This document shows positions 3,001 to 41,004 of a DNA stretch of 64,000 nt, piece after piece. Both the position numbers and the translations under genes were made by a program. Source of the stretch: Bispira polyomma (Eukaryota); assembly GCA_965649765.1 (NCBI GenBank), contig OZ287752.1:76632001-76696000 (forward strand), read 5' to 3'. Position 1 is the first letter of the stretch; every line of letters begins with the position of its first letter. The notes under the pieces were generated by a model that ran no database searches, had not been told where the DNA came from, and saw only the letters and a list, made by a program, of their open reading frames with translations.

Positions 3001-3311
3001 AGTTTAAGCACTAGATGTAGATAGTTCCCTTCCTTATCTTTGTTACAGTCTAGTACCTCATATTTAAAATTGTTTCTAAATAGTATTGCAACTCCACGAG
3101 AGTTAGTTTTAGTTCCATGAATAAAGCATTTGCCATTCCACATTTCAGTGACCTTTGATACATCTTTTTCACACCAATGTGTATCTTGTAAGCACAGAAT
3201 ATTTAGCTTGATGTCTTTAAAGTATGACAGTACATCGATCCTTTTTTCCATTTTTTGTAAACCTTAACAATTTGCAGACAATACCTTTAAATTATTTCCA
3301 ATATTTGACAT
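1..3311 (-). mobile_element. L1/Tx1-clade LINE ORF2 (APE endonuclease + reverse transcriptase), disabled; runs off the window edge
   Basis: ATG at 3311 (MSNIGNNLKVLSANC*GLQKMEKR). EN motifs ILCLQDTH, SRGVAIL, LYGPN, CGDFN, GYRSDH. RT motifs KSPGMDG, WRPISLL, IDFEKAFDS, GCRQGDPISPYLFL, QFADDT. Several stops/frameshifts (~3265, 2898, 2331, ~1680). Confidence 0.95.
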
Positions 3312-4460: not shown

Positions 4461-4646
4461 CAGTAGAACCTCTATTTTATGGACATCTTGGGGGAGTGAG
4501 AATTGGTTTGGATAATAGAAGGTCCGTAAAATAGAAGTGGTATTTAAGTGTAAAACAATAGCAAAAAATACATTTCGGAGAGTAAAATTGAGTTCCTAAA
4601 ATCAAATACTCGTTTAATAGAGGGTTGGATAACAAAGGTTCTACTG
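4461..4646. mobile_element. Tc1/mariner-pogo-like MITE (family A, TIR CAGTAGAACCT, TA target duplication)
   Basis: TA|CAGTAGAACCTC...AGGTTCTACTG|TA; related copies at 35151, 46367, 56455, 59431 and 59890. Confidence 0.8.
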
Positions 4647-4804
4647 TACGTATTTTGAACTCTCATTAAACTTTATCCACTGTTTACATTTACTCTTTCA
4701 TTTACTGAAGTTTTATTATAAATTATGGCTATACAGGTTTTTGAGTTTTAAAATGGGGTTGTACTATATAATAATACATGTATTTAGGAGAAAAAAAGTC
4801 TGAA

Positions 4805-5866
4805 TTAGTGGGATTTAAGTACTTCTGTTGCTACTTTCCTAATAAGTTCAAACCTCTGTTTGCCTAGGTTATAACCTCCATATTTACGAGTTACAATGAG
4901 TATACCTTGAGTAACTTGATTTTCTTGCAACATCTCCATTAGAATTTTGCCTCCAGCCCATTCACCATCATCATTGTGCCCACAAACAGTTGCACCGTCA
5001 ATGTCTATGTAAGTATAGGCATATGCTATGTGGCTGCTATGTAAAATTAACTCATTCTGGTGAAGGGCACGGAGTACCAGATTGGCTTCATTTTTTGTAT
5101 GCACTGGATGAAAATGACCTTGAAATACACTTTGCTTAACTTCTGTCAGGGGTGAATGCAAGATGTGATCAAAGTTGACAGGATCTCCACTGGATATGGT
5201 GTAATCTAAGGTGTTGTGTTTAAAAACTCCGGTTTGGACCTTCGAGTTAACAATCAGCTTGTCTTTAACAAGTTGTATTTTAGTGTTAGAATTGTTTACC
5301 TTGGCCTCGTTCCGCATCTTTACTAACTGTGGTACCTGAACTGTGCGCCTTTCGCAAACTGCCTGGGGAAGTTGTTCACTCATGGAGTATGGAGTGGTCT
5401 TCAGATTTTTAGCAAAGGAGAGAACTATATCTTTTCCTCTTTGTGAGACAAAAGAAACAACAACAGGTCTGGGTTTACTTCCTTTTTTGCCAATACGATG
5501 GGTTACGTCTACTCGGATCTCCCCACCAGGGTTTTCCCTAGAAAATATGAAGCCAGCTGGAATATTTAATGTAGATAACAGCAGGTTGTGTACTACACTG
5601 TAAATGTCTTCCCTATCTTGCTCAGGGAGTTGGTAGAAAATGAGATTTTTTTTCATTTGCTGAGTTTCCATTGATGATACCTTGGCTTCCAATGATAAAA
5701 CTTTTGAATTCAGCCTTGAAACAATCCCATCCGATTCTTGTAATAGGAGTTTCAATTGTCTGTTCTCATTTTGCAGTGCATTTATATCGATTGCTGTTTC
5801 CACTTGTTGATGTTTTAGAATTTGAAGTATTTCATCCACCTTTTGTTTCATTGACATACTCGTCAA
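4805..5866 (-). CDS. L1-type ORF1 protein (coiled coil + RRM/CTD) fused to a C-terminal IMPACT/YigZ (UPF0029) domain
   Basis: N-terminal heptad coiled coil. ORF1p-like motifs KKNLIFYQLPE, THRIGKKGSKPRPVVVSF, SEQLP..ERR. C-terminal ~117 aa (5158-4808) carries KQSVFQGH, SSHIAYAY, NDDGEWAGGKIL, IVTRKYGGYNLGKQRF, matching IMPACT/YigZ motifs. Co-oriented and upstream of LINE ORF2. First real ATG is a few codons after the TTG start. Confidence 0.85.
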   Translation of the reverse strand: MTSMSMKQKVDEILQILKHQQVETAIDINALQNENRQLKLLLQESDGIVSRLNSKVLSLEAKVSSMETQQMKKNLIFYQLPEQDREDIYSVVHNLLLSTLNIPAGFIFSRENPGGEIRVDVTHRIGKKGSKPRPVVVSFVSQRGKDIVLSFAKNLKTTPYSMSEQLPQAVCERRTVQVPQLVKMRNEAKVNNSNTKIQLVKDKLIVNSKVQTGVFKHNTLDYTISSGDPVNFDHILHSPLTEVKQSVFQGHFHPVHTKNEANLVLRALHQNELILHSSHIAYAYTYIDIDGATVCGHNDDGEWAGGKILMEMLQENQVTQGILIVTRKYGGYNLGKQRFELIRKVATEVLKSH

Positions 5867-5980
5867 GTCACCATTCTCTGAGGAATTACCACTGGGATTT
5901 CAGCCTAGGCTAGGTGGACGTATTTCAAGATCTTGTGTAGCAATATCCTATGAAACAGTTTTTGTTTTTATTTGTGTTCT

Positions 5981-6250
5981 ATTTCAATCTAATACACCAA
6001 TATATCTATTACACTATATGTGTAGTGGAAAGAATTTTTTTTTGAAATGTCCCAAAGCACCTAACAGTTACTTTACTGAAAATTGTTTTAATATTGTTAC
6101 AGTTATTGTTTTTATTCCTAATGTATTTCAATCCAATACACCATTGAATCTGTTCCTTACACTATGTGTGTAGTGGAAAGACTTTTTTTTCAAAATATCC
6201 CAAACCACTAAACAGTCACTTCACTGAAAATCATTTCGATATTATTTACA
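5981..6250. repeat. Tandem dimer of ~145-bp unit upstream of LINE ORF1
   Basis: tttcaatc(t/c)aatacacca...tgtagtggaaaga...ctgaaaat occurs at ~5981 and ~6126. Confidence 0.75.
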
Positions 6251-7129
6251 TAGTAAATCCTTCTTGGTGTTGTATTGACCAAAGGTCAGTCCTTACCAAA
6301 AAAAACAACAAATAATATTAGTTGTGCACACCCAAGGCTGTCACAGACGTTTTTCTTCAATGAACTAGCCTGATATTCATTTTAAACCGCCAATATACAT
6401 AATAGTTCCCTGTATACTACAATAAATTAAAATCCAAGTCCACAACTTGCATTTATCAGACACTAATTGATTTTTTTTTACCCCCTTCCTAAATCAAAAG
6501 GGTTTGGTGGCATTATCAAGGTCTAGATATTCCATCAGTTCTATTTTTATCAAAGGCATCATTTGCACTGGCTTTTCAAAGTACATGTGAACACACGTCA
6601 ATATTTCAAATATGGCATTCTGTAGATTTTTACCTGAAGAAAAAAATATTTGTCTTCCACAAAATATATAGTTTTACAATCTGTGCATTTCTTATTCCCA
6701 GCTCATTTTGTTCACTGGCTATAATTCTTTCCTTTCATAGGTAAATTCCATGATTCCTGTATTTGTTTACTAGAGAAATCTTCTAAAAACGCCTCTCCCA
6801 AAAAAACACATGTTGCATGTTGAAGTGCCAAAATCAAGTTGAAATCAATCAATCTTGAAATTTTGTTGATTTTGACTGCTAGTCATACAACTTGTGCTGC
6901 TCTTCCATAAACGTATGGCCAATCCATTCTGTTCTTCTTGCAATATTTCGACAAATATCTCAATGACTTTATCACCTGACATTTTAAATTTTTCGACCTA
7001 GAACTGGTTTTAAACTTGATTCTTACCTGGGCAATGCCACATCCCTCCACTAAATTTGACTAGATTAGACCAAATCCTGATGACAAACAAACCATTGGAC
7101 ACAGGTAAAAATATGACATCCTCATTAAA

Positions 7130-10100
7130 TCTTTCTTTTGTTTTCATAAAAATCATATATCATCAATACTGTAACATGAAAAACACAATTTTACACAACA
7201 TCATTACTAATGTACTAAATGTTTCCTATATTTTACTTTCATGAAAAGTTTTTAAAAAAGTTTTATGTCTGCAAACATGTAATCAATTTCAAATATACCA
7301 TAATGTACGTAAATAAATTGGCAAATACCCAATTTTGTTGAAATTGACTTTGTGTATCGATTTCAATACTCAATACAAATATTGTTCTTCATAGTTTGTT
7401 TTAAGTCTCCTTTCTAATTTAATCAACTTCAGTAACGTAGCTTTACTGCGCATGTGAAGATAGAGTATTTAGTTGTAACTAACAAGGTATTAATTGGGAG
7501 GAAGATGTCATTGTTTATATGACCTAGTATAATCTCGATTGGAGTAATGCATATAATTTTATTTACTTTAACTTCTGTGCACCTTTTTAAATCTTCTGAA
7601 AGAGTTTTAGCATTTTCACATAAAACTAGTGGATGTAACAATGTTTCTGGATATGAGTGACAAAATCTGCACATTGTTGAATCACTTATGGCCATTTGAC
7701 CAAGGAGTTTGTTTGTTTCCACTATTCAATATTATTCTCTATACTGAAACCAAATTAGTTGGTTATTCTTTATTTACTTTGTTATTATACTTTTTATGAG
7801 TTAAAACAAACATTAAATATTCTTTTCTAAGTTAATCCATCAATAACGGTTTCCAAGTCCTTGTGCCACTCCTTTTTAAATTTTCTTTCCCTGGTTTAGT
7901 AAAAAAGTTAGGTGGTGGGCAAAAAGGGCCTTTGGCAAACTCCCAGAGTTTTAAGTTTAGTACATTATGTGAACTCCTGTATTATGCTCCTAACCTGGAA
8001 GTAGTCCAAGAAGTTTGTGATTGAAAAAATATATTTAGATTCAATCTCTTCCTTAGTTAATATTTTATTTGTGGAGGAGTCCACAAGTTCGCAGATTTGG
8101 GTAATCCTTTTGTTATACCACAATTCTTTGTATAATTCAGCATTTTTTTAGTCTACTATTATACCATAGAGGTGTAGACACTTTATCTAAGCTTGTCTTT
8201 AAGGGAATCGTGCAATATATAAAGTTCCACATTTTAAAAATTTCTCTTTAGAATGGGTTTTTAGTTTTTTTGGTATAATTTTACCGACCAATGTGGGCCA
8301 AAGTCCATTTATTTTTTAATGTGTGTGTTTTCAAACAATTTGACCTACCAACATTCTTCAGATTGTATAAGTCTTCTCATCCAAGTACATTTAAAAGCTT
8401 TAATAGAGTAGCATATATTTATCATTTTTAGCCCACCGTCTGTATATGTTTGAGTGACGTTAACACGTTTTATTTTGTCTGGCTTATTGTCCTAAAGAAA
8501 TTTTGTTTCAAGTTGTTTCAAAAAATTTTCGCTGGGTATAGGACTGACCATAAATAGGTGATTCAACTTGATAATTGCTAAAGTCTTAATTACCATAATT
8601 TTACCCAATGGTTATAGTTCGCTTTCTCCAGTTTTTTAAAGTCTCGTCAATCTTGTGCAGAGCTTTGGGGTATTTCAAATCTGGAATTTTATCCAAATCA
8701 ACGATAAATGCTATTCCCAGTAACGAAAATTCTACCATGACCCAATTTAATTTATAGTTTGTTTTCATTTTTTCTTTGGTAAATCGTTTTCTTCCTATCC
8801 ATACCAATTTTGTCTTGCTAATATTCATTTTTAACCCTGATACTGAACCGAAAACTTCTAAAGTATATAGGGCTGCTAACAACAAACTTGCTGAGCAATC
8901 CATTATCAAAGTAGTGTCATCAGCAAATTGGGTGATTTTAAACTCTTGGTTTCCAACAATTATATCGACAATTTCTTTATTTTTTATCAATTTAAATAGG
9001 ACTTCTGCACACAGAATAAATAGATATGGAACAAAAGGATCTCTCTGCTTACACTCTCTCTATGTTAATTAAATCAGACAGTACACCTGCTTGTAGTATT
9101 TTTACTTTTATATCTCTATTGAAGAGCTTTATCCACTCATTAAAACTTTTACCAAATCTAAATTGTTCTAGAGTTTGGTAAATAAATTTAATCGATATTT
9201 AATCGAAAGCTTTTTTGAAATCGATGAGCATGACAAGTCCATTGATATTCTTATATTGCATGTAATTCACTATATCATAAATTAATCAAGTGCCTTCTCC
9301 AATAAAGTGACTTTAATAAACCCAGTTTGTGCCTTTGCTATTAGTTTGAGCAGAAGTTCTTTTATCCGTGCTGCAATAGCAGAGGGAGCTACCTTATAAA
9401 GGACACTTATTAACGAGATTTGTCTCCAATTTTTTAGCTAATCTAAACAACTAATTATAATTTGTCTAAGACTATTTGGTAGCGAGCCTTTCAAATAGGA
9501 ATGATTTAGTGCCCCAAGAATGAAGTATTTGAGCTTCGACCAAAATACCTTGCAGAAATCAGCGGGAAGGTCGTTGATATCAGGAATTTTATTATTTTTC
9601 ATATTTTCAATGCTAAACTTAGTGTTAGGGGACCTTCTAATTTAGAAGCTTCCTCAAGTGAGAGTTCATTATCAGCGTCAATTAGGCCTTCCCAGTTTAA
9701 ATCTTGTAAATCTTTTTCCCTATTTGCAAAGAGTTTTGCATAAAAGTTCCTTACTTTGTCAAGTATCTCTTTTTGTGATGATGATAATGATGTATCACCA
9801 TTTTCGAGCTGAATCTTTCTTATTTTTTTTTTCTACATATCTATTTTTCTAGATTACAGAAATAATCACAGGGTTTCTCGTTTAAATGCAGGTTCTGTAC
9901 CCTAGATCTTATCATATGGTTATTCATTTGGGACTCTCTTAAACATCGTAATTCTTCTTTTTTTCTTTTCATGCATTCCAAAGATTCAACGGTCTCCACG
10001 TTTTCTAAAATCTCAAACTCAACAGTCAGCCTCTATGCATCGTGCAGTTTTTCTTTTTAACTTTAGTTGCAAATTTTATTGTGTCCCCTCTAATTCTTAG

Positions 10101-11310
10101 CAAAAGCATTTCTGAGAACAGGTCATCGGATATAGTAGATTTAATATGGCTATCTGAAATTGAAGCTAAATTGCTCGAATTATATACAGGTAATATATAT
10201 TGTTGTTTTTAATTTGTACAATAGATTCATTTATAATTTCTAGATCATCTGGATTTTTTAAGTGACTACAATTTAGTCTCCAAACTCCTTTACCTTTTTC
10301 AAAATTATTGAGTATGATATCCACATTTACTCCTGAAAGGTCACTCCGGTACCCCGGCTTTATATTACAACATTGAGTCAAGTCAGTTAAAGTGTTTCAA
10401 ACTAAGAAGTAAACCAGTCGCGCCTGTTTTACTGCATTTCTCCCACTCCAAGTATATCTTTTAGTTGGTAGATTAAAGTATCTAAATGCATCATACAATT
10501 TAAATTGGTTCATTGTGACTGCTGATCTAGATTGGGGGTTATTTATCATCAAATAATTATTCGAGTCTAGCTTTGAGTCAATTGAATTGAATTGAATTTG
10601 GATATTTAACGTTCACTCTAGTACCTGTTTAGGTTATATTGAGACGGGTAGTTGGAAACGCTGGAGAAAACACTGCATACAGTTGATCAAGGTTCTGCAC
10701 TGAAACCAGCGGTCCACAATAAGGAACTCCCACTTTTCCCACATAGGCATCAACGGGATTCGAACTCATGCTGCCCAGAGGTGAGAGACCAGTGATTGTA
10801 AAGCGCAATGCTTGTTAACCACTAGGCTACCGCGCTTTGGGTCAAGGATCATGTTGAAATCTTCACATATTATTGTGTATGTTTTACATGATTCCTCCAT
10901 GTATTACTTCAACTTTAGAAAAAATTATTAAAATTATCTGTATTTGGCACATAGACTAATTAAAAGTACATTACCAATACAGTCTTTAACAGTATTTTTC
11001 ACCTTGTACTCAAAGTCGTTTTTTAAAATTATTGCCACCCCTCTCGAGTTTGATTTAGTACCATGTATTATAGTCTCGTAGGAAGAAAAGAGTATTCGTA
11101 TTTCATTTTTATCTGACAGAGTAACGTGTGTGTCTTGTAGGCAGAGGATATTTACCTTCTCATTATCGTTTAATAAATAATTTAAGACATCATATCTCTT
11201 TTTCTTATCTCTTATACCTTAAACATTTGCTGATGACACTCTTGCTGTATTATGTATAGACATTATGAATACTGGCCCAGAGAGTTTACATTTGCCGTAA
11301 TGTAATTTCA
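7130..11310 (-). mobile_element. Second L1/Tx1-clade LINE, ORF2 only, heavily degraded
   Basis: ATG at 11263 (MSIHNTARVSSANV*GIRDKKKR). Motifs ILCLQDTH, NSRGVAII, GYRSDL, QFADDTTL, C-terminal CRFCHSYPETLLH...C zinc-binding motif (7429-7722). Many stops. Confidence 0.92.
10582..10833 (-). mobile_element. tRNA-derived SINE inserted in the second LINE
   Basis: Minus strand has A-box-like GGTAGCCTAGTGG, B-box GAGTTCGAATCCC and a (TTCAA)n tail. 12-bp TSD gctttgagtcaa (10570-10581) / gctttgggtcaa (10834-10845). Sister copies at ~37175 and ~47945. Confidence 0.88.
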
Positions 11311-11475
11311 AATCGAATTGTCATTTACTGAGTCATTTTAGTGTAAATACTTCACAATAAACCTGCAAAGCTGAAAGAACCCTATCGTTGTCAAACCAGA
11401 GTACAGAATCCATAGGTTTTATCTACAAAGAAGTTTTTAACTTATTGTGAGTGGTTATTTAAACATATATTTCAG

Positions 11476-13500
11476 ATTGTCCACGTACTTGTGTTAGTTA
11501 TAACAGAATGTGGGTGTATCCCATGCCCCACAGAAGGCGCAAATATCCAAGGCAAAATTCTGGACTACTCTACAGGACTGCCCATAGCAAGTGCCATTAT
11601 AACAGCCACTGGCTTCGATAATACCTCATCTGATTCATACGGCAGCTTCTTTCTGGTGCTATCTGACACACAAGACAGCCGGCATGTACAGCTTATTGCT
11701 ACTCACATCCATTACACAGATTTACCCAGATATATTGCCATTTCACAACCAGGACAGTCACATATTGAGATCTTTCAAATGATCAAAAAAGAAGAACCTA
11801 TACAAATTGAGTCATCTGAGGACTCTACCCTGCCGCTCTTTGGAAGTTCTCCATCAGCCAAAAGGAAAAGAGCTGCAATAGGAAAAACAGGTAACAAAGA
11901 GCAACACAGATTTAGTGCTAATATTACTATTCCAGAGGACAGTTTTCTACAATTGGATGGCTCACAATATGATGGTAGTGTGAATGCCTCAATCACAAGT
12001 ATTGATACGTCTGACTTTAACGCCATGATAAACGCTCCAGCTGAGATGAGCTACATCAATAATAACGGTGATTTTCAGCCTTTAAGAGGTTATGCTTTGT
12101 TCACGTTAAACTTCATTGGTGCTTTAGTGGGAGAGAGACTGCAACTCCGACATAATATCTGTATTACAATGGAGCTACCTTATAGACTAAATAGTGAAGC
12201 AGCAATGTTTATGTACAATGATAAGTCAGCATCATGGGACAAGAACATTCAACTAAATGTGACTGAAATTGGCACTTCTATTACATCAATATCAGGATCG
12301 TTTTTTCTTCAGCATGATATTTCTTGGTTAATGATTGCCTCCGAGGTGGTATTAGATAACATTTGTTTCTCTAAGATCAAAGTCTATGAAACTAATAACT
12401 ATGATATCCCTGTGACTGACATACCCAATATTAAAATCATTGTCAATGACCAACCCAGTGGCAGTGTTCCAAATTATGGTGAGATTTCGAGTTTTAGGGC
12501 CATCTCAGATTCAGAAAATATTGAAGGATATTGCATTGCACACTCTTGTCAAAGAACCTCATCAGTACGACATTACACAGGTTTTTTTACAGCTGTAGGT
12601 GGAGTGAACTCTGATGTACCTTATCTAACACCAGCTCTAAATCATGAGGGAATCACAAATCAAACCGCAGAGCTTATTGACTATGATATTGATGACATTG
12701 CTGGTATACCACTAATCAGAGCCAAATTAAATTACAACATCATTCCAAAAGGTAACTATGGACCATATTACGACCAACATGATTACAACTGGCAACGATC
12801 AGATACCTGTTCGAAAATTCCTGAAGATCACTTCCGGTTTTACCTTAATAATGCTACCAGTGAAGATGAATCCTGCATCAAAGAAACTGAATTTAGCGTA
12901 CAGGAGGATGTACTGTCAGCCACAGACCCGGAACATATGAACAATCTGGCTTGGTTCAGCAGATCCCAGCGATCCCTGTATGACACCTGTTATGTGAAGG
13001 TATTGGTATCAAGTCCAGAACCGGTTTCCATAAGGGCTCTTAGTAAAGTCGGTAATATCTCTCACGGTGAGGACATCATTGCAGGGGAAACTCTGTATGG
13101 GTTTAGAGATAAATGTCAGCTTGGTGCCATGTGCCTGGAAGTGAAACATCCTGGAAAGGTGGCAGACGGTCAGATGGACTATACCCGCATTGAAATATCA
13201 CATCTAAGAAGTACAGGTAGTGATCTAGCTTGCAGCCTAACCGATATCAAGTGGGAAATAACTGCTGCCTATGGAGAATATATAACTACTTCACCAGGTA
13301 ACCCAGAGTTTCATATGTATTTGAAGAATTCTCCATTTGGGCCAACATTTGGTGTCTACTGTGTCAAAAGTGAGCAAAATAAGCAAACTGCGAGGAATAA
13401 AGCCAAGGCTATGTGTTACAGGGGGGATTATGATGATTCTCTAACTCTACTTGAGAAAGAAAATAGCGTCAATTGGGCTGTGAAATTTGATTGTCAATGA
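11476..13500 (+). CDS. Terminal exon of CILP-like paralog A (upstream exons not in window)
   Basis: Acceptor tttcag| at 11475, phase 0, intact 674 codons. Collinear with exon 9 of the 30737-41004 gene. Furin-type site KRKR at 11860-11871. AATAAA at 13600. Confidence 0.88.
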   Translation: MVHVLVLVITECGCIPCPTEGANIQGKILDYSTGLPIASAIITATGFDNTSSDSYGSFFLVLSDTQDSRHVQLIATHIHYTDLPRYIAISQPGQSHIEIFQMIKKEEPIQIESSEDSTLPLFGSSPSAKRKRAAIGKTGNKEQHRFSANITIPEDSFLQLDGSQYDGSVNASITSIDTSDFNAMINAPAEMSYINNNGDFQPLRGYALFTLNFIGALVGERLQLRHNICITMELPYRLNSEAAMFMYNDKSASWDKNIQLNVTEIGTSITSISGSFFLQHDISWLMIASEVVLDNICFSKIKVYETNNYDIPVTDIPNIKIIVNDQPSGSVPNYGEISSFRAISDSENIEGYCIAHSCQRTSSVRHYTGFFTAVGGVNSDVPYLTPALNHEGITNQTAELIDYDIDDIAGIPLIRAKLNYNIIPKGNYGPYYDQHDYNWQRSDTCSKIPEDHFRFYLNNATSEDESCIKETEFSVQEDVLSATDPEHMNNLAWFSRSQRSLYDTCYVKVLVSSPEPVSIRALSKVGNISHGEDIIAGETLYGFRDKCQLGAMCLEVKHPGKVADGQMDYTRIEISHLRSTGSDLACSLTDIKWEITAAYGEYITTSPGNPEFHMYLKNSPFGPTFGVYCVKSEQNKQTARNKAKAMCYRGDYDDSLTLLEKENSVNWAVKFDCQ

Positions 13501-23798: not shown

Positions 23799-26254
23799 TT
23801 AACAAGAAAACTTGACAGCCCAGTTATTTAATGTAGTCTCACTAAAATGTACCTTATCATCATTTGTTCCGGTCATGCACATATTCACAGCACGTTGTCT
23901 GGCTAGACCTTTGTCATGTACACCTTTAGCACAGTAGATACCAAAGTCAGGACCGTAGGGAAGATCTCGAAGTTGTAAGGAAAATCCCCCAGGTAACCAT
24001 TCCATGCCATCTGGATATATTTTCATTAATAAATGATTGATGTCCAATGGCATACACAAACCTTGCTCATGTATATGGGCTTGAATATTAAGCAAAGTGT
24101 TTTCATACTCAGATACACTTAGCCCATCTGTTACCAAGCCTGGATGTTTGACCTCAAGACATGATGCCTCAATCTGATGTTCTATACACTTAAAAGCTTT
24201 ACCATAGTCTATAAAATCATGGGATTTGTTTATGTAGCTTGCAGCTGTCAGATTCACAATAGCATGTTCAAGACTCATCTCTACCAGGACTTTGAGGTAA
24301 CAGACATCATATTTGTTTTGGTGAGACCTTGAAAACCACGCTTGAAAGTTTTTGTTTTGCTCTGCCACATTTTCTGGAGGAAATTTAATTTCCTCTAAGG
24401 CATAAGTAGTTGATCCATTTCCCAGATGAGAACAAGATGTTATGGCAGTAACTGTTGTATCCTCTGGTGTTTCTAATATGGTAACTGGTTCTGTTTGTTC
24501 TTCTGTAACACTTGTCATACCAATAACTGTTGTATCCTCTGGTGTTTCTGATGTAGTAATATGTTCTGTTTGTTCCTCTGTATCACTTGTCGTACCAATA
24601 ACTGTTGTATCCTCTGGTGTTTCTGATGTTGTAATATGTTCTGTTTGTTCCTCTGTATCACTTGTCGTACCAATAAGTGTTGTATCCTCTGGTGTTTCTG
24701 ATGTAGTAATATGTTCTGTTTGTTCCTCTGTATCACTTGTCGTACCAATAAGTGTTGTATCCTCTGGTGTTTCTGATGTAGTAATATGTTCTGTTTGTCC
24801 CTCTCTATCACTTGTCGTACCAATAAGTGTTGTATCCTCTGGTGTTTCTGATGTAGTAATATGTTCTGTTTGTTCCTCTAAAACACTTGTCGTACCAATA
24901 ACTGTTGTACTCTCTGGTGTTTCTGATGTAGTAATATGTTCTGTTTGTTCCTCTGTAACACTTGTTATATTATTAACTGTTATATCCTCTGGTGTTTCTA
25001 ATATAGTACTATTTTGTGTTTGTTCTTCTGTAACACTTGTCACATCATTATTAGTTGTGCTATCTATTGCCCTATCTATTGTACTATAGATCCATGGATC
25101 ACCTGAATTTGTTGTGAAATCTCTATCTGTGATTGTCTCTGGTATCTCTGATGCTGTACTGTTTTCAATGACATATTCTGTAGCAAATGTTATATGAATA
25201 TCTATTGTGGCATCTGTTGTTACAGCGTCATTACTTTGCCCCATCAGTTCATCTTGGGTACTTGATATCGCAGTGACTGTTGTGCTGTCTCTTACTTGTA
25301 AAGCTTTACTGTGTGTTTTGTGCTCTTCAGTGGTAACTATGATGGCCTTGTTCTTCTTCATGCCACCCATAAGACTACGCCTTATTTTCATCTGATCTAC
25401 AAACATATTCGTTTAGGTTAGTTTACTTTGGGTATAATGTTGTTTTCAACATGTCTTGTGTCATATCACGACATGAAGTTCACTGATGGAGGATTTCAGA
25501 ACGGGATAGTTGGTCAAGGTTTTTGTCTGCTCTGCAAATCACCATCCTTAAGGAAGTCAGGGCCAAGGGCCACGATTAGACCACAGTGCAATAAAATTAC
25601 TATTTATCCAAAATTGCACACTGCAACAGTTACTAGCACATAGTAATTCCATCAGTTAACACGTAAAAAATTCAAGTAATGTAGGAAATAGGAGTAGATA
25701 CAAACCATGTGGGTGCACCATTAGTTTGACAGAACAGATACTGTTACGTTGACCAAACACATTCTCCGAATACATTGTTAATGACATTCCATCAAAGTAT
25801 CTTGGCACATTTGAGATGAACAGCTTTCCACCGCTGCAATTTGCTAATGATGTTTGCTGATCAACATCAGTTTCTTTTATTTGATGGGTGCAAATCATAA
25901 TGTTTTCATCTGATATCCAGTCTATCTGCACTACATCATTGGGTAAACTTGAGTTACAAACTATTATGGCCCCCTTCCTTTCATGGACATGGACACCAGC
26001 AACTGAAAGAAAACTTTGAGGATATAAATATAGATATACATGTACGTGAAAGACTTTTAAGGAAATGATGTTAGTGAATGTTATTTGCCTGTTGTTTTCA
26101 AGAAAACAAACTTGCCAATAATGCATATATTATGATATAAAACTGGGTTATCGATATGATAGCTAAATTTACCTGTGCAGATATGTAGGCTTAATCCCAA
26201 ACTGCAAGTAATTATATATAATCCATATAAACCATGTCTTAGGTGTTGATCCAT
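23799..26254 (-). CDS. Secreted CILP-C-terminal-domain protein: signal peptide, Ig-like domain, Thr/Glu mucin-like repeats, Cys-rich C-terminal domain (~658 aa, 3 exons)
   Basis: Exons 26254-26173 (MDQHLRHGLYGLYIITCSLGLSLHICT, donor gtaaat), 26002-25706 (phase 1-1 Ig-like exon; ttttctttcag acceptor, gtttgt donor) and 25396-23799 (tttgtag acceptor). Phases are compatible. C-terminus AWFSRS..YDVCYLKVLV..CLEVKHPG..YGPDFGIYC..MC..NWAVKFSC aligns to the two + strand paralogs. Confidence 0.85.
24450..25040 (-). repeat. Coding tandem repeat, 75-bp (25-aa) unit, ~8 copies
   Basis: Unit EEQTEHITTSETPEDTTLIGTTSDT; DNA landmarks recur every 75 nt (24568, 24643, 24718, 24793, 24868, 24943). Confidence 0.95.
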
Positions 26255-29960: not shown

Positions 29961-30736
29961 ACCATAAGCTTGATATTGTTGACTATTATACTACAAAGCA
30001 GCTACCATGTTTGTTTCTCTGTATATTTTGACTTTCTCATAGAAAATGATATCTTATATAATACTGTGTTAGTGAATAGTAACTGCAAACCACTTTGGCC
30101 AAAAAAATTGAATTACATACTATGATATTTACATGACATAAACCGAAACGTTTTTTTGTTTTTCAGGTTAGTTAAATGTAAGTATCTGCAGAAGGACCAG
30201 TTTAAATGTTCATGTAAAGAAATAAAATTTTTGGGGATACATGTAAAAAGATAAATCATAAGTCAACTTGAGGAGCTTAATTTATTGACTCTTGTAATTT
30301 TTATAAAATACAGCTTGTTTGTACTTCATGTTTGACAGTCATTGAAATTATAGCCAAAAACCTCAACCACATTCCTGAATAAGTACTTGGTGGTATCATT
30401 AATAAGTCTTCAATTGTTTCATATATCATGCTAATAAAAAGTGAGCTGACAATATAAAATTGTATTGATTAACAATTATACTGATTCCTCCAAGAGTATG
30501 TACAAAGTGTACAGCCTCGTTTTGGTATAAAATCATAGTAAATAGGTCACTTTAGGTTGGTTTGTGGGTTCTGATTGGCTGACATAGTAGTTGAACATTT
30601 TCATGAAGTAATTTGATAGCATTTCTTCTGTATTATTTCCTGAAAAAACATTTCAATGCTCACAATTAAAGTATATATGTATCACTGTGGTAATTAATAC
30701 ATTTGTGGCTGTTTACTTCTACACAAAGCTGACATC

Positions 30737-33700
30737 ATGAGCTGGCAGGGAAAAATGGAAGGAAAACCCTTGTCAGATACTGGATACACCAGTCTGCAAG
30801 AGACTGAGATATCACATGATACTAAATCTGACATAAGTAGCGCTCAAACTGACATCAACAGTACTGAAGAAACTTTGCCATACAGAAAGATGAATGGAGA
30901 CTTTGTGATCCGATTTACTGGAAATAACGAGTTGAAATCAATTGATGAGGACATACCGTATTGTAATAAATCATTTCACTGGGGAGAGGATGGTGACGAG
31001 AGAAGATTTGCTGAAGAATCAGATCATAATGTCAACAATGCCACAAGAAAAGGGCTTCGGGAGAAGAGTCAATCCCATGGAATGTCTTCCTACATGACTA
31101 GCAGTGGGATTGGGCCAACATTTTACCACAACACTGGTCAAGGAGGACATCTATCCGAGCAAGCTATCGGTGGATTTGACAGTCATCAACAACCCGTCAA
31201 TGAAAACAAAGGATACACTGGAAAAAGTCAAGGCTTAACCAATGAAAATGCAGACTGCACTAAACATGTGTATCAAGGTCACTGTGTTCCAACCAGTGAT
31301 TACCCAGAGGAGGATTATCTAACCAGCAGTAATACAGAAACTACTTTTAATGGAGAAGTTCTACAAGATGGCTACAGCTCTGTTAAGCATCATACTGGCT
31401 TATCACAAGGCAGTGGTTATACCAAACCTTTGCAGTCTGGAGACAGTTACAGGAAACTTCAACTCGGAGATGGTGAATATATTCATCCAGATAATGACAT
31501 TAAGATCTACGAAGACTGCTCTCAGGGTGGAAAACAAGATGGCTACCATGAAATTGCTTACAAAGATATAGATCCTGATTACCCAGGATCAATGGGTTAC
31601 ATACTGCAGCCACTACGTAAGCCTGCTCATTTAACACTAGGTGGAGCTACAGTTACTTCTATGGATGATCACGGTTGGTCTGATTGTGTACACTTTCATG
31701 TTTTACATTTCAAACTGTTAAAGTTTTACAAATTATGTTCTTTCTCTTGACAAAATGACTTGTACAAATATGAATTTGTCCAAGTTTGGGTACAGGTAAA
31801 TGAGTGTTATCACTGTACCTTTTTTACAGTATCAGAGGATTATCTGACGTTACCTGAATCAGCTATCAGACCACTACCCAAGCCCCCAAGATCCACCACT
31901 CGGTGTAGCAGACCTTGCCAGTGGAAGGCAGTAGGTGTTGTGATAATTGTGGTGCTGTTGGGTGCCATTATTGGTGGTATACTGATTAGTGGACACAGGG
32001 ATGATACAGAAACAACAACAGGTAGTTGCATGCACTTTTTGTACTGTTGGAATTTCACTAACCTGGATTTAGTTCCATGGTCAGAGAGTCCAGTGACTCA
32101 CAATACAATACAATAAAAAGTATATAAGATACCAGAATCTATCTATTTCACTAACCTGGATTTAGTTCCATGGTCAGAGGGTCCAGTGACTTACAATACA
32201 ATACAGTAAAAAGTATATAAAATGCCAGAATCTATCTAAAAATATGAATTGACACAACAATGAATTAATTGGGTCTGTATATCCTTCATTGAACAAAAAT
32301 GATGTTTCATTTGGAGATTGACAGTTGACAGTTCTTTAATCTGGCAGAAGATCCCTACCAAAGTTGTGCTTCTTTAGTGAAATTTCAGGAACGATCATCA
32401 CCTGCATGTGGCAGAGTAGAAAAGATGGATTCAAGAACTGTGTCATTGCAATTTATAAATAGTACAGTGGCCTAGTACAAGGGAGGTCAATTAATCTGTT
32501 TCTTAAAGAACTCATTATTTTAGTAGATTCAAGAACTGTGTCATTGTATTTTATAGATAGTACAGTGGCCCAGTATAAGGGAGGTCAATTAATCTTTTTC
32601 TTAAAGAACTCATTATTTTAGTAATTTCCCTCAGATAACTAATCATGTTTATCTACTCAGGAAAGTCAATCACAGTTTAAATGTTTTATCTGCTTTAAAA
32701 GCTGGATTTCTGACCTGGCTCGTGACGAAAAAGAGTTGTTGTGTGAAATAGGGAAAAACTTACAAACCCATACTTGTACCGTATTGTTCGTATAATTGCT
32801 ATACATATGCTTAGAATGAACTGTATATTCACAAATATCTATAATAATCATATTACTATACAATGTGCTTATTAATTTTTATTGTAGCCTATTGCATTTC
32901 TTTTATTGTAGCATTGATTTAAGCATAGGAAATTAAATGTACTTTTTCTATATCCATTTTCTGTCTCATAAACTAAGCAAATAAATGTGGCATTTCCTAG
33001 AGTTTTTTTGTTTTTTTTTGCTTTACTTAGCTGTACCAACTCCTGGATTGTCAGGCTGGACAGAGTGGACAGACTGGTCATCTTGTGACAAGACATGTGA
33101 CCAAGGAATACATACCAGGTCACGTGTATGTCGATCAGAAAAGGAAGTGTGTATTGGTCCAACTGAGCAGGCAGAGACTTGTATTGACCAACTCTGTCCA
33201 GTCCCTCGTAAGTTTACAAATCATACGCATCACGTACATACTTAGGGACTCCCATAGAGTGACATAGAGTCATCTCCAAAAAATGTTGAATTTTTAATCT
33301 TCTTCAAAAAATCCCTGAAATTGGAAAAAAGAGTGGTTCATATATAAAAATAAAACTCAAAATATGTAAAAAGGCACACTACACTACATTGTTGAGTTTA
33401 ATTATATTGTTGTTTGTCACTTTTTTTTAGAAAATATGTAACAAGCTGTTTTAAATGGATGTATGTGGTATTATACACTAACAGTTGAATTCGGTTGAAT
33501 GTAACTACATGCTATGATGTTTATGACCAGTGTTATTTGTTTTATAAATGATATATATAAAATTGTTAAATTAACAAGGGTTAAAATGTAATCATTGTAT
33601 TATTAGTATGTTGAAAAAATTAGGCCCTGAAACGCTTTGACATGAACTCTCTATACATGCCCTGAAGACTAAAATGAACTAAGAATGCCCGGAATGCTGT

Positions 33701-36700
33701 ATGTGTAATGGTTTTTCCTTGTTTAGCACGGGGAGTTTGGAGTTCCTGGAGCCAGTGGTCAATCTGTTCAGTGACCTGTGGACCAGGGGTTCAGGTCAGA
33801 ACTCGACATTGTGAGGAGTCTGGTGATAAGGACTGTGTGGGAGATTCTGGACAGCAAAGGGACTGTAACCATGGAAACTGTAAAAGTAGGAAGATTTGTT
33901 TTTGGTTTGAGTATATAAGGCATAATCTTGTATTATTGATTCTGAATGTGAATGTAAAAATACTGTTGTGTCATTTGATATTACATCATCCATTTTTTAG
34001 GCCAAATACTAAACATGAATGCCAAAAAAATCTATTGGGTAATGAATTTTTTTTTAACATTTTGTCTATCTAATCAAGCAACTTTTTTTTCAAAGTGGAT
34101 ATTGTATTGAAATAACGCATTTAATTACCAAATGTGTATCAACAGTGTTTATGTGTTTAAATGTGTAACAATATCACTGAAACTGAAAACAATCCAATGA
34201 ATTTGACTATAAAACGTGGGTATAGCTTTTGTGTAGAAGATATTTTCCTCTGAAATATGTTATGTAGCCACAATAGCTTTAATTAAATATCCTTTAATTT
34301 TTACGTGATTCAATTTGGAGATTTTCTTAAATTTTAAAAGTCACTATTTAGGAATGCAGAAAAGTTGAAATATATACCAGTTGTAATTGTGCTATTCATA
34401 ACTAGTATTTAATATTAAGTAAAAAAAAAATAATATGTATTTGTCCTTACATAAATATTAAATAGTGTACTGTAAGCCTGTAAGGATGGGTGTTAGGCTT
34501 TTTGGAGCAAATTTACTTTAACAGTACCAATTATGTTTACCTTTTTCGAAATGGCAGAAAGATTTGTAGATTTAAATTGTTCTTTTGAAGAACTTTTTAG
34601 ACAATTTGGAAGACAATAAAGCATTAATAGGTAGTTCATGACAGTTAGAAAGAAATAGTTTAGCACAACAAAGGGGCAAAGCTCCCACACCCCTTCTTAA
34701 ACTTTTAAAGTGGACTTAGTGACGGCAAATTGCACTTAATTATTCGGTGAAATTCTTGTATACCACATTGCCATTAAAATAAAAACCTATGTAAATGTAT
34801 GTATCTATATATCTTACACAGACTGTAACTTTTCCTGCCCTGGAGGGGGTGTAGTGATCACTGATGTCACTTGTGACCAGTGTAAATGTAATCAGTCCAG
34901 TACACTTCAGCTCACAGTCACAGATACTAACAACATACCTCTGGATGGGGTCACCATAAGTGATAAGCAGTGGGCAGGAAAACAACTGGCCATCTCAAAC
35001 TCAAATGGACAGATAAAACTAGATGGGGTCTGTAGCGGAACTGTGTTGATGTTCCTTAGAGCTGGCTATGTGACACAGGAGATAACAGTGTCTGTTACTA
35101 TGGATACAAGGATACGCTTGGCTAAAATAGGTTATAAATAAAACGATATGCAGTAGGACCTTTATTATCCAAACATGTTGGGAGAGCAATAAAAGGTTCA
35201 TATAAAATAGAAGATGCATTTCAGTGTGTAAAACAATAGGACGTCAATTGGGGAGAGTAAAACCGAATGTTTGGGTTACAAGAAGTTTCAGATAATAGAG
35301 GTTCTACTGTATTAGTAATGCTTATTAGTCGTAATGTTTTCACTTAAAACGAATTTTTAGGTTTTTTATTTTTTGGGGGTTTGCTAAAGCAATAGTGAAC
35401 AATTTAAACCAGACTGAGAATTTAAAAGTTTCCTGGTTGTTTAGTTGAAAATGATGAGAAATGATCAAATTCAATGAATTCCATATATTTACTTTACATA
35501 TCCCTCTACTATATTGTAAATGTTTGAAACTTTATTCCATCAAAATTGCTACTTATAAAATTAACAGTGTTTCTTGTATCCTAGTTCTACTCTACATAAC
35601 TGCCCACCCACAAAACAAGCTTAGATTGACAGGAGAATCAGTCCGATTATGCTGTACTGCAGAGGGCAGCCCACCGCCTGAGTACTTTGAATGGTATTTC
35701 CTTGGATATTATTTTGCAGTTGAACCCATTTTAATCGAAGCTCAAGGAACCATGAGAAATAACTCAGGATTTCTACTTAACAGGGCAGATTTTTTATAAA
35801 GGCATATAATGAAATTGTATTGAATATAAAAGAGTTTTACTTAAAAGGGTTTGATTGCAGTTATTTTTGATGTGGTTCAACTTTACCATTGCTAGATTGT
35901 ATCTATATTGTTCAACCGAAGTTATATATATTTAATTAATATTTGACCACTTTTAAAGCTCTTATCTCTCAACAGCCATCCTACCTTGCTGCTCACCTTT
36001 CTTTCCCTTCAGAGGGGAAAGATACTTTGTGTTTCCTCAGTCAAACCTGCCAAGAGGGCTGGATCCAGAACTTTCTCTGTTGCTACCGCTTTGTTATGGA
36101 ATAGGCTCCCAGCTGAGCTTAGATCACTTAAAACACTTTCTGGGTTAAGAAAAAGCTTGAAACATATCTAATCAAACTCCCTTATCTTCCTTAGTTCCCT
36201 CCATGTACACCCACGATCTTTTCTTACCACCTTGGCTATGCTTTTTTTGACTTCTCGATTGGTTGATTATATTGTTGTAGTTTAGAAGATGCCTTACATC
36301 AATCAATAAAGCGTGTCAAATACCATATACATCACAAAGGGTGTTACCTACCTCAGTAACTCACCAGTATACTTGTACATACCACCGTCATCCAAGCAGT
36401 TGAAATTGAGCACCAGTGTAAGTTTTTGCTCACACATGTTAGTTTATGTTATCCAGTTAGGGACTGTATAACCAAACAATGGCTATGGTAGCCATGATTT
36501 AGTTGATGTTGTTTGTAATGTATATCACAGGTATCGAGATGGGATATTTGTGAAAGACATTTGGGGTGACAATTACACCAGTGAATTGTCAGTGAGCTCC
36601 CTGAGCCAAACGAATGATGCTGGAGGGTACACATGTAAGGCCCATAACAGATTCAGTGCAGTCACTTCATATCCTGGGACACTGGTCATAAATAGTAAGA

Positions 36701-39700
36701 TTTTTTTCAGTTGCTAAGTTGGGGTTTAACATTAATTTTGACACGTTTTTCAGTCATATAATGATGTGCAGGATCTCATAGCAGGTTAGTTGGTCTAGGG
36801 TTTTTTTGTGCTCCAAACCACCAGCCTTCAGCAAGTCTACTTCCGCCCATACATGCCATACAGTCGAGATTCAAACCCATGACTACAGAGGTAGGAAGGC
36901 GAGAGTGTTACCTCTACACCACTGAGGCCCATATATGGTACAAAGTGAATGGCCCAGGGTCATCAAGCAATTCAGGAAGTTTCTCAATATCATCCAATTA
37001 GATTCCATGGAACAATATTTCCAGCTAATCAAAATGTTTTGAAGTTAAAAATAAGAATCGTTTTGGAATACCAGCCCTAAATCTTTAACATATCGCATTA
37101 ACCGTGGAATTAGCTAACCCTATGAAATAATGACACTAAACAAGACAAAAACGTGTACATGTGTAGACGTGATGAAAGGTTCTGCACTGAAGCCAGCGGC
37201 CCACAGTAAGGAACTACCACATTTCTCACATAGGCATTGACAGGATTCGAACTCACGCCGCCCAGAGGTGAGAGACCAGTGATTGTGAAGCACAATGCTT
37301 GCTAACCACTAGGCCACCACGGCCCCAGATATTTTAGTACAGCAACTGGAAGAGCAGGAATGAGTTCATCAACTTGAATATTTTACAATAGAAGTTTGCA
37401 TCAAATACATGTTTTTACACTATATGATATAGCACATAGTGTCTATAATCACTACACTTACAATTGCTTTCTGGGGCCACGGTGGCCTAGTGGTTACATC
37501 AAAGAATTTGCTTCACTATCACTGGCCTCTGACCAATGTGGGTTTCTATCCTGTTCCCTCCTTTATCTGGAAAAGTTTGACAGGTACTAGCCACTATAGG
37601 CCGGTGTTTTACAGTGTTTCAGCATTGGTTTCCTCCACCATTCAATCTGGCTGCTGTAATATGATCTAAGCCATTGCAAGAAATGTAAAAACTCAGCTAT
37701 ATCTAATTTTAATTTGTTTTTGTGTTGACTTTTCCATCAGATGCCATATCGGCTTTCTGTCAGACATCTCTACAGTCTAAATCTATCACTATTAACAACT
37801 GTGTGGATAATAAACCTGTACAAGTAGACGTTGGGAAGTGTGAACCTCTGCCATGCCGCAATACTAACTCTGACAATGATGACAGCTCTTGTGGCAACAA
37901 AGGCGGACTTTGCTGTGGACCAAAATCTACAGCTACAGATACAGTAGAATGTGGTGTAAGTTACTCCTTATACAGACATATTACATACATCCATGACTGA
38001 ATCTATAGAATTGCAAAACTTGAAAGCTACTCAGTAGTGCAAATTTTATTGCTATTGGAATTTTGATTAATAAATATAGTTACCTCAGCCGCAAAAAGTG
38101 ATATAGTATCCTCAACGAGGCCTATGAAATGGTACACCTGTTTTACACACACACTAGGTCATCGAGAATGTGTACACTGTGAGATTGACATCCCTTCTCA
38201 GATTGTTAAGGTCACCATATAGCTTTTTCAGCATGTGTGCTGAGCCCATAGAGATATGCTAGCAAATTTACCGGAATTCCAAGTACTACATTTTATGACA
38301 GATGATCATTACTGAAAATCATCACATGACTAGGCTCTGTGGCTTTAACAACTGTTATGTAAAGGTGTCTACACGCTAATTTCATTTTCCTGTACCTGCT
38401 GTCATTTTGGGTATAACTATAGTCCTTGTATTGTAGATGTCCATAAATGACTTTCGTCCTGATACGTTGGTCAAAGTCAGATATATTAAATTGTGCTAGA
38501 TAGAGTCAATTCCACTTCATTTTCTCACACAGAGGGTGTTTGAATTGCTGCATTTGTTGTCCAAAAATGTCCGTCCGACAGAGCGATTTTAATTTAATTT
38601 TATTCTCAACCCGATTTTAACCAACCTAGATCCCACTTCACCCCAGATATGTTCTGAAATTTTATGAACAATTCTTACCTGGCCTATGCCACATCCCTCC
38701 ACCAAATTTGACTGAAATTGTTTCAGTCAGGTATGTGTAATCTTGATGACAAAGAAACCGTTGGACACAGGTAAAATTCTAACATCCTCAGCAAAACATA
38801 TGACTTGAATTGTCATATACTAGGTCATTTTGGTGAACCGTTACTACTTCCCAATAAACCTGCAAAGCTAAGAGTACTTTTATGTTGTCAAATCATATAG
38901 TACAGAATCCAAACTTTTGTTTTACAAAAGGGTTTGTAAATTATTGCCAGTGTTATTTAAACATATATTTCAGACTGTCCACGTACTTGTGTTAGTTATA
39001 ACAAAATGTGGGTGCATCCCATGCCCCACAGAAGGCACGAATATCCAAGGCAAAATTCTGGACTACTCTACAAGAATGCCCATAGCAAGTGCCATTATTA
39101 CAGCCATTGGCTTCGAGGCAGGAAGAACCTCATCTGATTTTGAGGGCAGCTTCTTTATGGTGCTATCTGACACACAAGACAGTCGGCATGTACAGCTTAC
39201 TGCCACTCATATCCATTACACAGATTTACCCAGATCAATTTCCATTTCACAACCAGGACAAGCACACATCGAGATCTTCCAAATGATCGAAAAAGAAAAA
39301 CCTATACAAATTGAGTCCTCTGAGGATTCTACCCTGCCACTCCTTGGAAGTTCTCCATCAGCAAGAAGGAAAAGAGCTGCAACAGGAAAAACCAATCAAG
39401 AGCAATACAGTTTCAATTCTAATATTTCTATTCCAGGGGACAGTTTTCTGACACTAAATGGTTCCGAATATGATGGTAGTGTGAATGCATCAATTACAAG
39501 TATCGATACGTCCGACTTTAACGCCATGATAAACGCTCCAGCTGGGATGAATTACATCAATAATAACGGTGATTTCCAGCCTTTAAGAGGTTATGCCTTG
39601 TTTACATTAAACTTTATTGATGCCTCAGTGGGAGAGAGGCTGCAACTTCGACATAATATCAGTATTACAATGGAGCTACCTTATAGACTAAATGGTGAAG

Positions 39701-41004
39701 CAGCAATGTTTATGTACAATGATCAGTCAGCAACATGGGACAAAAACATTCAACTGAACGTGTCTGAAACCGACACTTCTACTACAACAGCAATATCAGG
39801 ATCGTTTTTTGTCCAGCAGGATATTTCGTGGTTAATGATTGCTGCGGAGGTCGTATTGGACGACATTTGCTTCTCTAAGATCAAAGTGTATGAAAATAAT
39901 AACTATGATAACCTAGTGACTTACATACCCAATATTAAAATCATTGTCAATGACCAACCCAGTGGCAGTGTTCCAAATTATGGTGAGATTTCGAGTTTTA
40001 GGGCCATCTCAGATTCAGGAAATGTTGAGGGATATTGCATTGCACACTCTTGTCAAAGAACCTCATCAGTACGCCATTACACAGGTTTACTTACAGCTGA
40101 AGGTGGAGTGAACCCTGATGTGCCTTATCTAACACCAGCTCAACATCATGAGGGAATCACAGATCAAACTGCAGAGCTTATCAACTATGATATTGATGAC
40201 ATTACTGGTATACCACTAATCAGAGCCAAATTAAAGTACAACATCATTCCAAAAGGTAACTATGGACCATATTACGACCAACATATTTACAACTGGCAAC
40301 GATCAGATACCTGTTCGAAAATCCCTGAAGATCACTTCCGGTTTTACCTTAATAATGCTACCAGTGAAGATGAATCCTGCATCAAAGAAACTGAATTTAG
40401 CGTACAGGAGGATGTACTGTCAGCTACAGACCCGGAACATTTGAATAATCTGGCTTGGTTCAGCAGATCCCAACGATCCCTGTATGACACCTGTTATGTG
40501 AAGGTATTGGTATCAAGTCCAGAACCGGTTTCCATAAGAGTTCTCAGTAAAGTGGGTAATATCTCTCATGGTGAGGACATCATAGCAGGGGAAACCCTGT
40601 ATGGGTTTAGAGATAAATGCCAGCTCGGTGCCATGTGCCTAGAAATAAAACATCCTGGAAAGGTGGCAGACGGTCAGATGGACTATACCCGCATTGAAGT
40701 ATCGCACCTAAGAAGTCCAGGTAGTGATATAGCTTGCAGCCTAGCTGATATCAAGTGGGAAATGACTGCTGCATATGGAGAATATATACCTACTTTACCT
40801 GCTGACCCAGAGTTCCATATGTATTTGAAGGATTCTCTATTTGGTCCGACATTTGGTGTCTACTGTGTCAAAAGTGAGCAAAATAAGCAAACTGCGAGGA
40901 ATAAAGCCAAGGCTATGTGTTACAGGGGGGATTATGATGATTCTCTGACTCTACTGGAGATGGAAAATAGCATCAACTGGGCTGTGAAATTTGACTGTCA
41001 ATGA
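30737..41004 (+). CDS. Type II transmembrane CILP-like protein (paralog B), 9 exons, ~1430 aa
   Basis: Exons 30737-31673, 31830-32021 (TM AVGVVIIVVLLGAIIGGILISG), 33031-33207 (TSP1), 33727-33885 (TSP1), 34822-35130 (Cys-rich + carboxypeptidase-regulatory-like), 35585-35693 and 36531-36694 (Ig: HPQ..VRLCC.AEGSP..W...DAGGYTCKAHN), 37741-37955 (Cys-rich, CCGP), 38974-41004. All introns are GT-AG with matching phases; total 4293 nt. Furin site RRKR at 39364-39375. Domain order matches the CILP family. Confidence 0.9.
32052..32237. repeat. Tandem duplication, ~93-bp unit x2, intron 2
   Basis: atttcactaacctggatttagttccatggtcagag...ccagaatctatct repeated directly. Confidence 0.9.
32429..32623. repeat. 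Tandem duplication, ~97-bp unit x2, intron 2
   Basis: gattcaagaactgtgtcattg...aagaactcattattttagta repeated directly. Confidence 0.9.
35151..35309. mobile_element. MITE family A copy
   Basis: CAGTAGGACCT...AGGTTCTACTG|TA. Confidence 0.75.
35950..36320 (+). mobile_element. CR1/L2 LINE 3' end fragment
   Basis: AGSRTFSVATALLWNRLPAELRSLKTLSGLRKSLK is typical of the L2/CR1 ORF2 C-terminus. Confidence 0.75.
36715..36930 (-). mobile_element. tRNA-derived SINE, degraded
   Basis: Minus strand begins GGGCCTCAGTGGTGTAGAGG, has a B-box-like GGGTTTGAATCTC and ends ..tgttaaacccc. Confidence 0.55.
37175..37326 (-). mobile_element. tRNA-derived SINE (same family as 10582-10833), 5' part
   Basis: Near-identical to 10690-10833; A box GGTGGCCTAGTGG, B box GAGTTCGAATCC. 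Confidence 0.85.
37473..37700 (+). mobile_element. tRNA-derived SINE, related family
   Basis: GGGGCCACGGTGGCCTAGTGGTTA head; internal tttcctccacca; similar to decayed copies at ~41423 and ~13895. Confidence 0.65.

Follow-up and report, generated by a model that had tools for sequence, protein, structure and literature searches.

We analysed a 64,000-nucleotide (nt) window, G000:C5:76632001-76696000 of a 1.04-Gb animal assembly, to which the window positions below refer. Between 30737 and 41004 it carries a CILP-like gene of nine exons, all with AG/GT ends and matching phases, that join into an open frame of 1430 amino acids (aa) without a stop, as a preliminary description of this DNA had modelled it. 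The product is most likely a type II single-pass membrane protein in which a long N-terminal cytoplasmic tail precedes a CILP ectodomain. The features of the gene are given below; the tandem paralog and the ortholog named there are described further on.

30727-30728 (+): possible splice acceptor AG, 8 nt 5' of the ATG, with a flank nearly identical in the tandem paralog
30737-31673 (+): coding part of exon 1; low-complexity sequence with 18 Tyr that makes up aa 1-312 of the predicted cytoplasmic tail
31535-31591 (+): conserved tyrosine block, aa 267-285, with YHEI (Y270), IAYKDI (Y275), which resembles an immunoreceptor tyrosine-based inhibitory motif (ITIM), and PDYPG (Y282)
31617-31622 (+): alternative in-frame donor GTAAGC, which would remove aa 294-312 (a tail 19 aa shorter)
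31830-32021 (+): exon 2, phase 1-1, no Met; YLTLPES-IRPLPK (Y317), a basic Cys-bearing juxtamembrane stretch and the predicted signal anchor
31931-31987 (+): predicted transmembrane helix, aa 347-365 (Kyte-Doolittle 19-mer 3.14), with a GxxxG motif also present in the paralog and ortholog
33031-33207 (+): exon 3, TSP1 repeat 1 (PF00090, E 3e-11)
33727-33885 (+): exon 4, TSP1 repeat 2 with WSSW, a WSXW motif (PF00090, E 3e-12)
34822-35130 (+): exon 5, Cys linker and carboxypeptidase-regulatory (transthyretin-like) domain (PF13715, E 1.5e-5, under the curated cut-off)
35585-35693 (+): exon 6, first half of an Ig domain (PF13927, E 1.3e-5)
36531-36694 (+): exon 7, second half of the Ig domain (PF00047, E 7.8e-5)
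37741-37955 (+): exon 8, CILP_5th Cys-rich domain (PF23708, 32.5 bits against a cut-off of 27)
38974-41004 (+): exon 9, second transthyretin-like domain, ZU5/GAIN-like sandwich, CILP_8th, CILP_C and stop
39295-39858 (+): beta-sandwich with the RRKR loop and the loop of the usual furin site (AlphaFold predicted local distance difference test, pLDDT, 90.2)
39364-39375 (+): RRKR (aa 885-888), in a subfamily-specific insert of ~20 aa

The Pfam search was run exon by exon. CILP_5th, CILP_8th and CILP_C scored above cut-off, following TSP1, carboxypeptidase-regulatory and Ig domains, so that the product belongs to the CILP family in the Pfam sense; in exon 9 the scores were 28.6 bits for PF23730 and 62.4 bits for PF23599 (cut-off 27), and the AlphaFold model of this exon had a pLDDT of 85.7. 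These matches agree with the order TSP1-TSP1, carboxypeptidase-regulatory-like, Ig, Cys-rich, RRKR and C-terminal region read earlier from the sequence. PF23591 found no match in the exons, a weak CarbopepD_reg_2 match and the fold standing in its place, and the tail, which begins in an exon 1 open frame of 337 codons at 41% GC, matched nothing in Pfam or the Atlas.

The residues of the predicted helix, aa 347-365, are the sole strong hydrophobic stretch of the protein, and hydropathy revealed none at the N-terminus. The 15 residues before the helix include 4 basic and 0 acidic ones and those after it 1 basic and 3 acidic (+4 / -2), and 10 N-glycan sequons lie in the ectodomain, on the C side. 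By simple hydropathy these are the characters of a type II single-pass protein, and they bear out the preliminary description, which had proposed that about 345 residues without an N-terminal signal peptide precede a single helix with type II charges; nothing hydrophobic lies before aa 347. The helix would act as an uncleaved signal anchor, leaving the mostly disordered 345-aa tail in the cytosol and displaying about 1065 aa outside.

Two relatives allow the gene model to be compared. A tandem paralog starts 41 kb upstream and has all nine exons in order (G000:C5:76621533-76645500); only its last exon lies in the window.

11476-13500 (+): last exon of the tandem paralog, 88% identical; exons 1-8 lie before the window (G000:C5:76621533-76630605)

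An ortholog was found in a second species (ENA ERZ22147071) by a word search with exon 9, which gave a single match. Exons 3-9 are present in the ortholog, and its last exon is 63% identical. Exon 2, which is 79% identical in the paralog, has its counterpart there (E 2.7e-9) with equal splice phases and the motif YLTLPES-IRPLPK. The first exon of the ortholog encodes 253 aa with 16 Tyr, and its 3' part matches exon 1 (E 8e-8), with the same donor and phase. This provides good comparative evidence that the predicted tail and anchor exons belong to the CILP gene. The donor at 31617, present in the gene and the paralog, was rejected as the main donor since it is absent in the ortholog, whereas the donor at 31674 chosen in the preliminary description is kept in both relatives. 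Coding exon 1 is likely to follow a 5' exon, and none was found for this gene. In the ortholog, an in-frame stop lies 12 nt upstream of the ATG, so that an upstream exon there would be untranslated and no signal-peptide exon can precede in frame. Intron 1 of the ortholog also contains ATG-GTG-G ahead of GTAAGT (L032 7310-7326); its phase agrees with that of the anchor exon, which would make it, speculatively, an alternative short first exon.

The tail appears to be constrained. Between the gene and the tandem paralog, aa 69-312 have a ratio of non-synonymous to synonymous substitutions (dN/dS) of 0.53 (p=0.006), which falls to 0.38 over aa 180-293 (p=0.003); the value for the ectodomain is 0.32. 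Two of the indels in exon 1 measure 6 nt, whereas those in the introns vary freely in length. Purifying selection on aa 69-312 of the predicted tail is supported by these values and would fit a receptor-like role. The tail had been called tyrosine-rich, a term that holds only modestly overall (5.5%, or 19 residues of 345; p=0.006-0.04 if the background is taken as 2.9-3.5%) and strongly for aa 179-317, where 13 of 139 residues are Tyr (p=3e-4). In the alignment with the ortholog over aa 223-312, the membrane-near third of exon 1, 7 of 8 tyrosines are kept, but no more than 28 of the 82 remaining residues (p=0.005, Fisher; reached in 4 of 2000 shuffles), a statistic that draws on only two independent comparisons and on alignment scoring that favours Tyr matches; Y317 is likewise kept.

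In the conserved block, YHEI, IAYKDI and PDYPG of the gene correspond to YDEI, IAYKDL and PDYPG in the paralog and to YHDL, LEYEEL and PDYPG in the ortholog, and the YLTL of the anchor exon is conserved in all three. One site, conserved in all three copies, matches the ITIM consensus I/L/V/S-x-Y-x-x-I/L/V. The immunoreceptor tyrosine-based activation motif (ITAM; YxxL/I-x(6-12)-YxxL/I) was considered and rejected, none being found in the gene, paralog or ortholog. Acidic YxxI/L/V sites recur in the tails of the anchored homologs P0042, P0062, P0132, P0037 and P0027 (proteins of Mercenaria, Owenia, Lingula, Mya and Amphiura). ITAM-like spaced pairs of YxxL/I were seen in P0062, P0037 and P0027, anchored CILP-like proteins of Mercenaria, Mya and Amphiura. 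A tail with conserved tyrosine motifs under purifying selection would agree with the receptor-like role proposed in the preliminary description.

The preliminary description had further proposed that the CILP scaffold was converted into a cell-surface signalling or recognition receptor, and had suggested a search for the same architecture in invertebrates. A profile search of 1.84 billion proteins returned 232 matches at 1e-10. Among the 34 long CILP-like matches, 20 carry an internal anchor that follows 26-200 aa, and in 18 of these the N side of the anchor is the more positive one; a further 9 begin with a signal peptide or have a very short N-terminus, and 5 are unclear. The anchored homologs come from bivalves, an annelid, a brachiopod, a brittle star and a hemichordate (database models from Amphiura, Glandiceps, Owenia, Mercenaria, Mya, Potamilus, Mizuhopecten and Lingula, nearly all named CILP-like), and many of them have short tails with few tyrosines; the secreted ones are bird CILP2, Styela, Branchiostoma and one Glandiceps copy (P0016). 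Anchored CILP-like proteins are thus the commoner form among the long non-chordate matches. The last exon has 28 matching places in the genome of the gene itself, and a tail-and-anchor exon lies upstream in at least four further paralogs. Three of these loci (G000:C4:61512001-61533000, C2:90380001-90400000 and C14:13402001-13422000) combine tail-and-anchor exons, with tails of ~60-125 aa, with the usual furin site. Two CILP-like genes on C4 lie head to head, one of them with a VWA domain after the CILP end. For the paralogs on C3, C5 (57.95 Mb), C2 (90.35 Mb) and C12, no anchor exon was seen in the DNA examined around them, which is no proof of absence. An intron-free 3.7-kb contig from a related animal (P0006) joins tail, anchor and CILP domains in one frame that runs across three exons of the C4 paralogs, and this contig is probably a transcript.

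With 20 of 34 long homologs anchored, and paralogs too, the membrane anchor is not peculiar to the gene. In an unrooted tree of 43 rows, anchored and secreted forms are intermingled, so that gain and loss cannot be told apart; an anchored ancestor would be as possible as a secreted one, and conversion from a secreted form is left without support. We found no literature on invertebrate or membrane-anchored CILP, subscription papers being outside our coverage. Judged by its sequence, the gene is an intact member of an expanded invertebrate CILP-like family, an overlooked family variant and not a one-off invention. What sets its subfamily apart, as far as can be read from the alignments, is the longest tail among those compared, the conserved tyrosine block and a relocated convertase site.

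Furin cleavage separates an N-terminal from a C-terminal part of CILP1 (PMC9052998, PMC5700204), and RRKR had been taken for this CILP furin site, at which the distal half could be shed. That identification does not hold. The usual site, which follows a W-x-x-G-x-W hairpin, is found in 67 of 84 homologs and is absent in the gene, paralog and ortholog; RRKR lies ~125 aa before it, at a place where only 3 of 79 homologs have a basic motif, namely the gene, the paralog (KRKR) and the ortholog (RKKR). In the AlphaFold models (pLDDT 85.7 and 90.2), the RRKR loop comes after the first two strands of the sandwich. By alignment and model, then, the usual CILP furin site is lost and a new putative site is regained in another loop of the same sandwich. 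The best folds for this sandwich were the GAIN domain of CD97 (Z 8.6, root-mean-square deviation 3.3 over 143 residues) and the ankyrin ZU5 domain (Z 7.2), with ZU5 domains at Z 6.6-7.2; these scores are middling, though members of the GAIN/ZU5 fold group occupy the top ranks. Since RRKR lies inside one folded domain, a cut there would nick the domain. In GAIN and ZU5 domains, two pieces stay bound after a cut within the domain. By this analogy the 888-aa and 542-aa pieces may stay bound, and shedding is possible, not implied. We found no solved structure of a CILP.

Comparison with known systems places the protein further. With vertebrate CILP1 and CILP2 (quail CILP2 matches the profile at E 9e-54) it shares the order TSP1, carboxypeptidase-regulatory, Ig, CILP_5th, sandwich, CILP_8th and CILP_C, the WSXW motif and a convertase site in the sandwich. 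The vertebrate domain order asserted earlier was thus recovered for the family domains, but not for the N-terminus, as bird CILP2 starts with a WxxW domain that is found in no exon here. Other features of the secreted vertebrate proproteins are also lacking, namely the signal peptide, which measures 21 aa in CILP1 (PMC7797476), and the usual furin site; in their stead there are a predicted type II anchor, the 345-aa tail and the new putative cut site ~125 aa earlier, and the last exon is only ~22% identical. The invertebrate models annotated as 'CILP-1-like' (XP_053392458.1 of Mercenaria, CAH1795468.1 of Owenia, XP_013387744.1 of Lingula, XP_072028130.1 of Amphiura and XP_077976884.1 of Glandiceps) resemble the gene in tail, type II anchor, TSP1 and CILP ectodomain, and several of their tails hold acidic YxxI/L/V sites. 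They differ in that their tails, of 14-200 aa, do not align with the tail of the gene, at 345 aa the longest seen, and in that most of them keep the usual furin site.

FAM171A1, FAM171A2 and FAM171B have long tails and an ectodomain of a carboxypeptidase-regulatory domain and a ZU5-like sandwich, the pair that recurs in exon 9; the two-domain plan of FAM171A1/A2 was reported as new and CILP was not mentioned (10.1101/2025.09.18.675241). The sequence link is weak (top two PDB matches at E 0.23 and 0.47; PF10577 in 4 of 78 members, best E 0.0018), and FAM171 proteins are trimeric and type I, with those two domains only and no TSP1, Ig or CILP C-terminal domains, whereas the gene, type II and with at least nine domains, falls outside that family. 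Teneurins likewise combine a type II anchor with a long N-terminal intracellular domain and a transthyretin-like domain (top Foldseek matches, Z 12.3 over 88 residues), but homology was rejected, as only this one small common domain aligns and the gene has no Pfam match to EGF, NHL or YD-shell. The GAIN domain of adhesion G-protein-coupled receptors and ZU5 (ankyrin, UNC5, NLRP1 FIIND) share the fold of the sandwich (Z 6.5-8.6, again middling) and differ in being self-cleaved where the gene has a convertase motif; by inspection, the motif H-L/F-S/T before the last strand is absent from the sandwich sequence.

Several further observations concern the surroundings of the gene. A head-to-head neighbour (23799-26254, minus strand) has a signal-like N-terminus, an Ig-like exon, Thr/Glu-rich repeats and, of the CILP domains, only the C-terminal one (37% identical to exon 9). 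Its second copy (G000:C5:76616114-76616674, minus strand) shows that it was duplicated together with the anchored gene, so that the tandem unit is the pair. The last intron of the tandem paralog, ~12.9 kb long, holds fragments of long interspersed nuclear elements (LINEs; window 1-11400), and a LINE ORF1-like frame with an IMPACT-like end lies at 4805-5866 on the minus strand. In the gene, intron 2 contains two short tandem duplications (32052-32238 and 32428-32623; 94 and 98 nt, ~94% identical), and intron 5 a short repeat of very high copy number (35150-35315; contig depth >20,000 against ~20). Over 34912-35132, a contig of run X3 has 14 differences across exon 5 and depth drops in runs X1 and X2; this may be the paralog or another allele.

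With moderate confidence, we favour the view that the gene encodes an adhesion or recognition receptor with a phosphotyrosine docking or endocytic output and no enzyme activity of its own. At the relocated RRKR, a furin-like convertase would cut within the ZU5/GAIN-like sandwich. The 888-aa piece, which includes the Ig domain and the two TSP1 repeats, would stay tethered, and the 542-aa distal piece would probably remain attached to it non-covalently until pulled or displaced. Once matrix, a growth factor or another cell is bound, the acidic YxxI/L sites may be phosphorylated and dock SH2 proteins (a phosphatase at the ITIM-like site), while the unphosphorylated sites may bind the endocytic adaptor AP-2.

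Some points weigh against a long-tailed signalling receptor. YxxI/L is also a plain AP-2 sorting signal; the tail motifs would suit sorting and SH2 docking alike, and sequence cannot separate the two. At the N-terminal end, dN/dS is ~1.2 for aa 1-55, that is, no constraint, and these residues are missing or unalignable in the ortholog. Exon 1 of the tandem paralog, otherwise open, carries one frameshift (a net loss of 13 nt around aa 57-66, next to a six-A run), either real or an assembly slip. The three sequencing runs that hold the stretch are genomic DNA, with even depth over introns and no splice joints, so that splicing is judged from the gene model and from comparison with paralog and ortholog. 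Finally, topology was called from simple hydropathy and charges.

We rank as the main rival a membrane-tethered precursor or growth-factor trap. In this reading the anchor would display a CILP ectodomain on the cell surface, where a TGF-beta-type ligand is captured by the tethered TSP1 repeats; furin would release the distal part into the matrix, and the tyrosines of the tail would be needed for nothing but sorting and internalisation. This is possible, but we regard it as doubtful. The fit of YxxI/L to the AP-2 consensus, the short, Tyr-poor tails of many anchored homologs and the regaining of a convertase site after loss of the usual one all speak for a trap, and so does the WSXW motif, by which CILP1 binds TGF-beta (PMC7797476); the WSSW of the second TSP1 repeat sits on the tethered side of RRKR. 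Yet about nine conserved tyrosines, several outside YxxI/L, exceed what sorting needs, their acidic context fits kinase sites, and the cut falls within a domain.

It is less probable still that the anchor is real and the tail shorter, as in ordinary short-tailed anchored CILPs. Such a tail could come from translation that begins at Met52 or further on, from use of the 31617 donor or from a short alternative first exon. The lack of constraint on aa 1-55 and the two donors would suit this, as would the 253-aa exon 1 of the ortholog, which may match from Met52 on, and the paralog, which must start at a later Met, a new in-frame one being present after its frameshift, unless the frameshift is an assembly slip. 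Against this, the ATG at 30737 is the first in frame and has an A at -3, and selection on aa 69-312 together with the conserved tyrosine block makes at least ~250-290 aa real. It is very improbable that exons 1-2 lie outside the CILP gene, or that the helix serves as a cleaved signal in a protein secreted as in vertebrates. Secreted forms do exist in the family (including the hemichordate P0016), but exon 2 is phase 1-1 without a Met, the architecture is family-wide, and no exon for a signal peptide turned up. In paralog and ortholog, exons 1-2 are also conserved in sequence, order and phase, despite introns that differ by kilobases.

The favoured reading of an anchored receptor bears on the family as a whole. 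The architecture is already present in public gene models. To our knowledge, CILP1 has been studied only as a secreted TGF-beta/IGF-1 antagonist in disc disease, osteoarthritis and heart fibrosis. As a speculation that we consider unlikely, CILPs might have begun in early bilaterians as type II surface receptors, with a FAM171-like module of transthyretin and ZU5/GAIN type nicked by furin, two bound halves and phosphotyrosine tails, of which vertebrate CILP1 and CILP2 would be secreted decoys without the anchor. If this were true, this gene, its cut site lost and then regained in another loop of the same domain, would demonstrate that function requires the nick. A testable idea of what CILP cleavage does follows from this relocation of the convertase site within one domain and from the likeness of that domain to FAM171, ZU5 and GAIN. 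Anchored CILPs whose tails bear tyrosine motifs occur in several invertebrate phyla, which suggests that there is a receptor family not yet described and that the vertebrate proteins originated differently.

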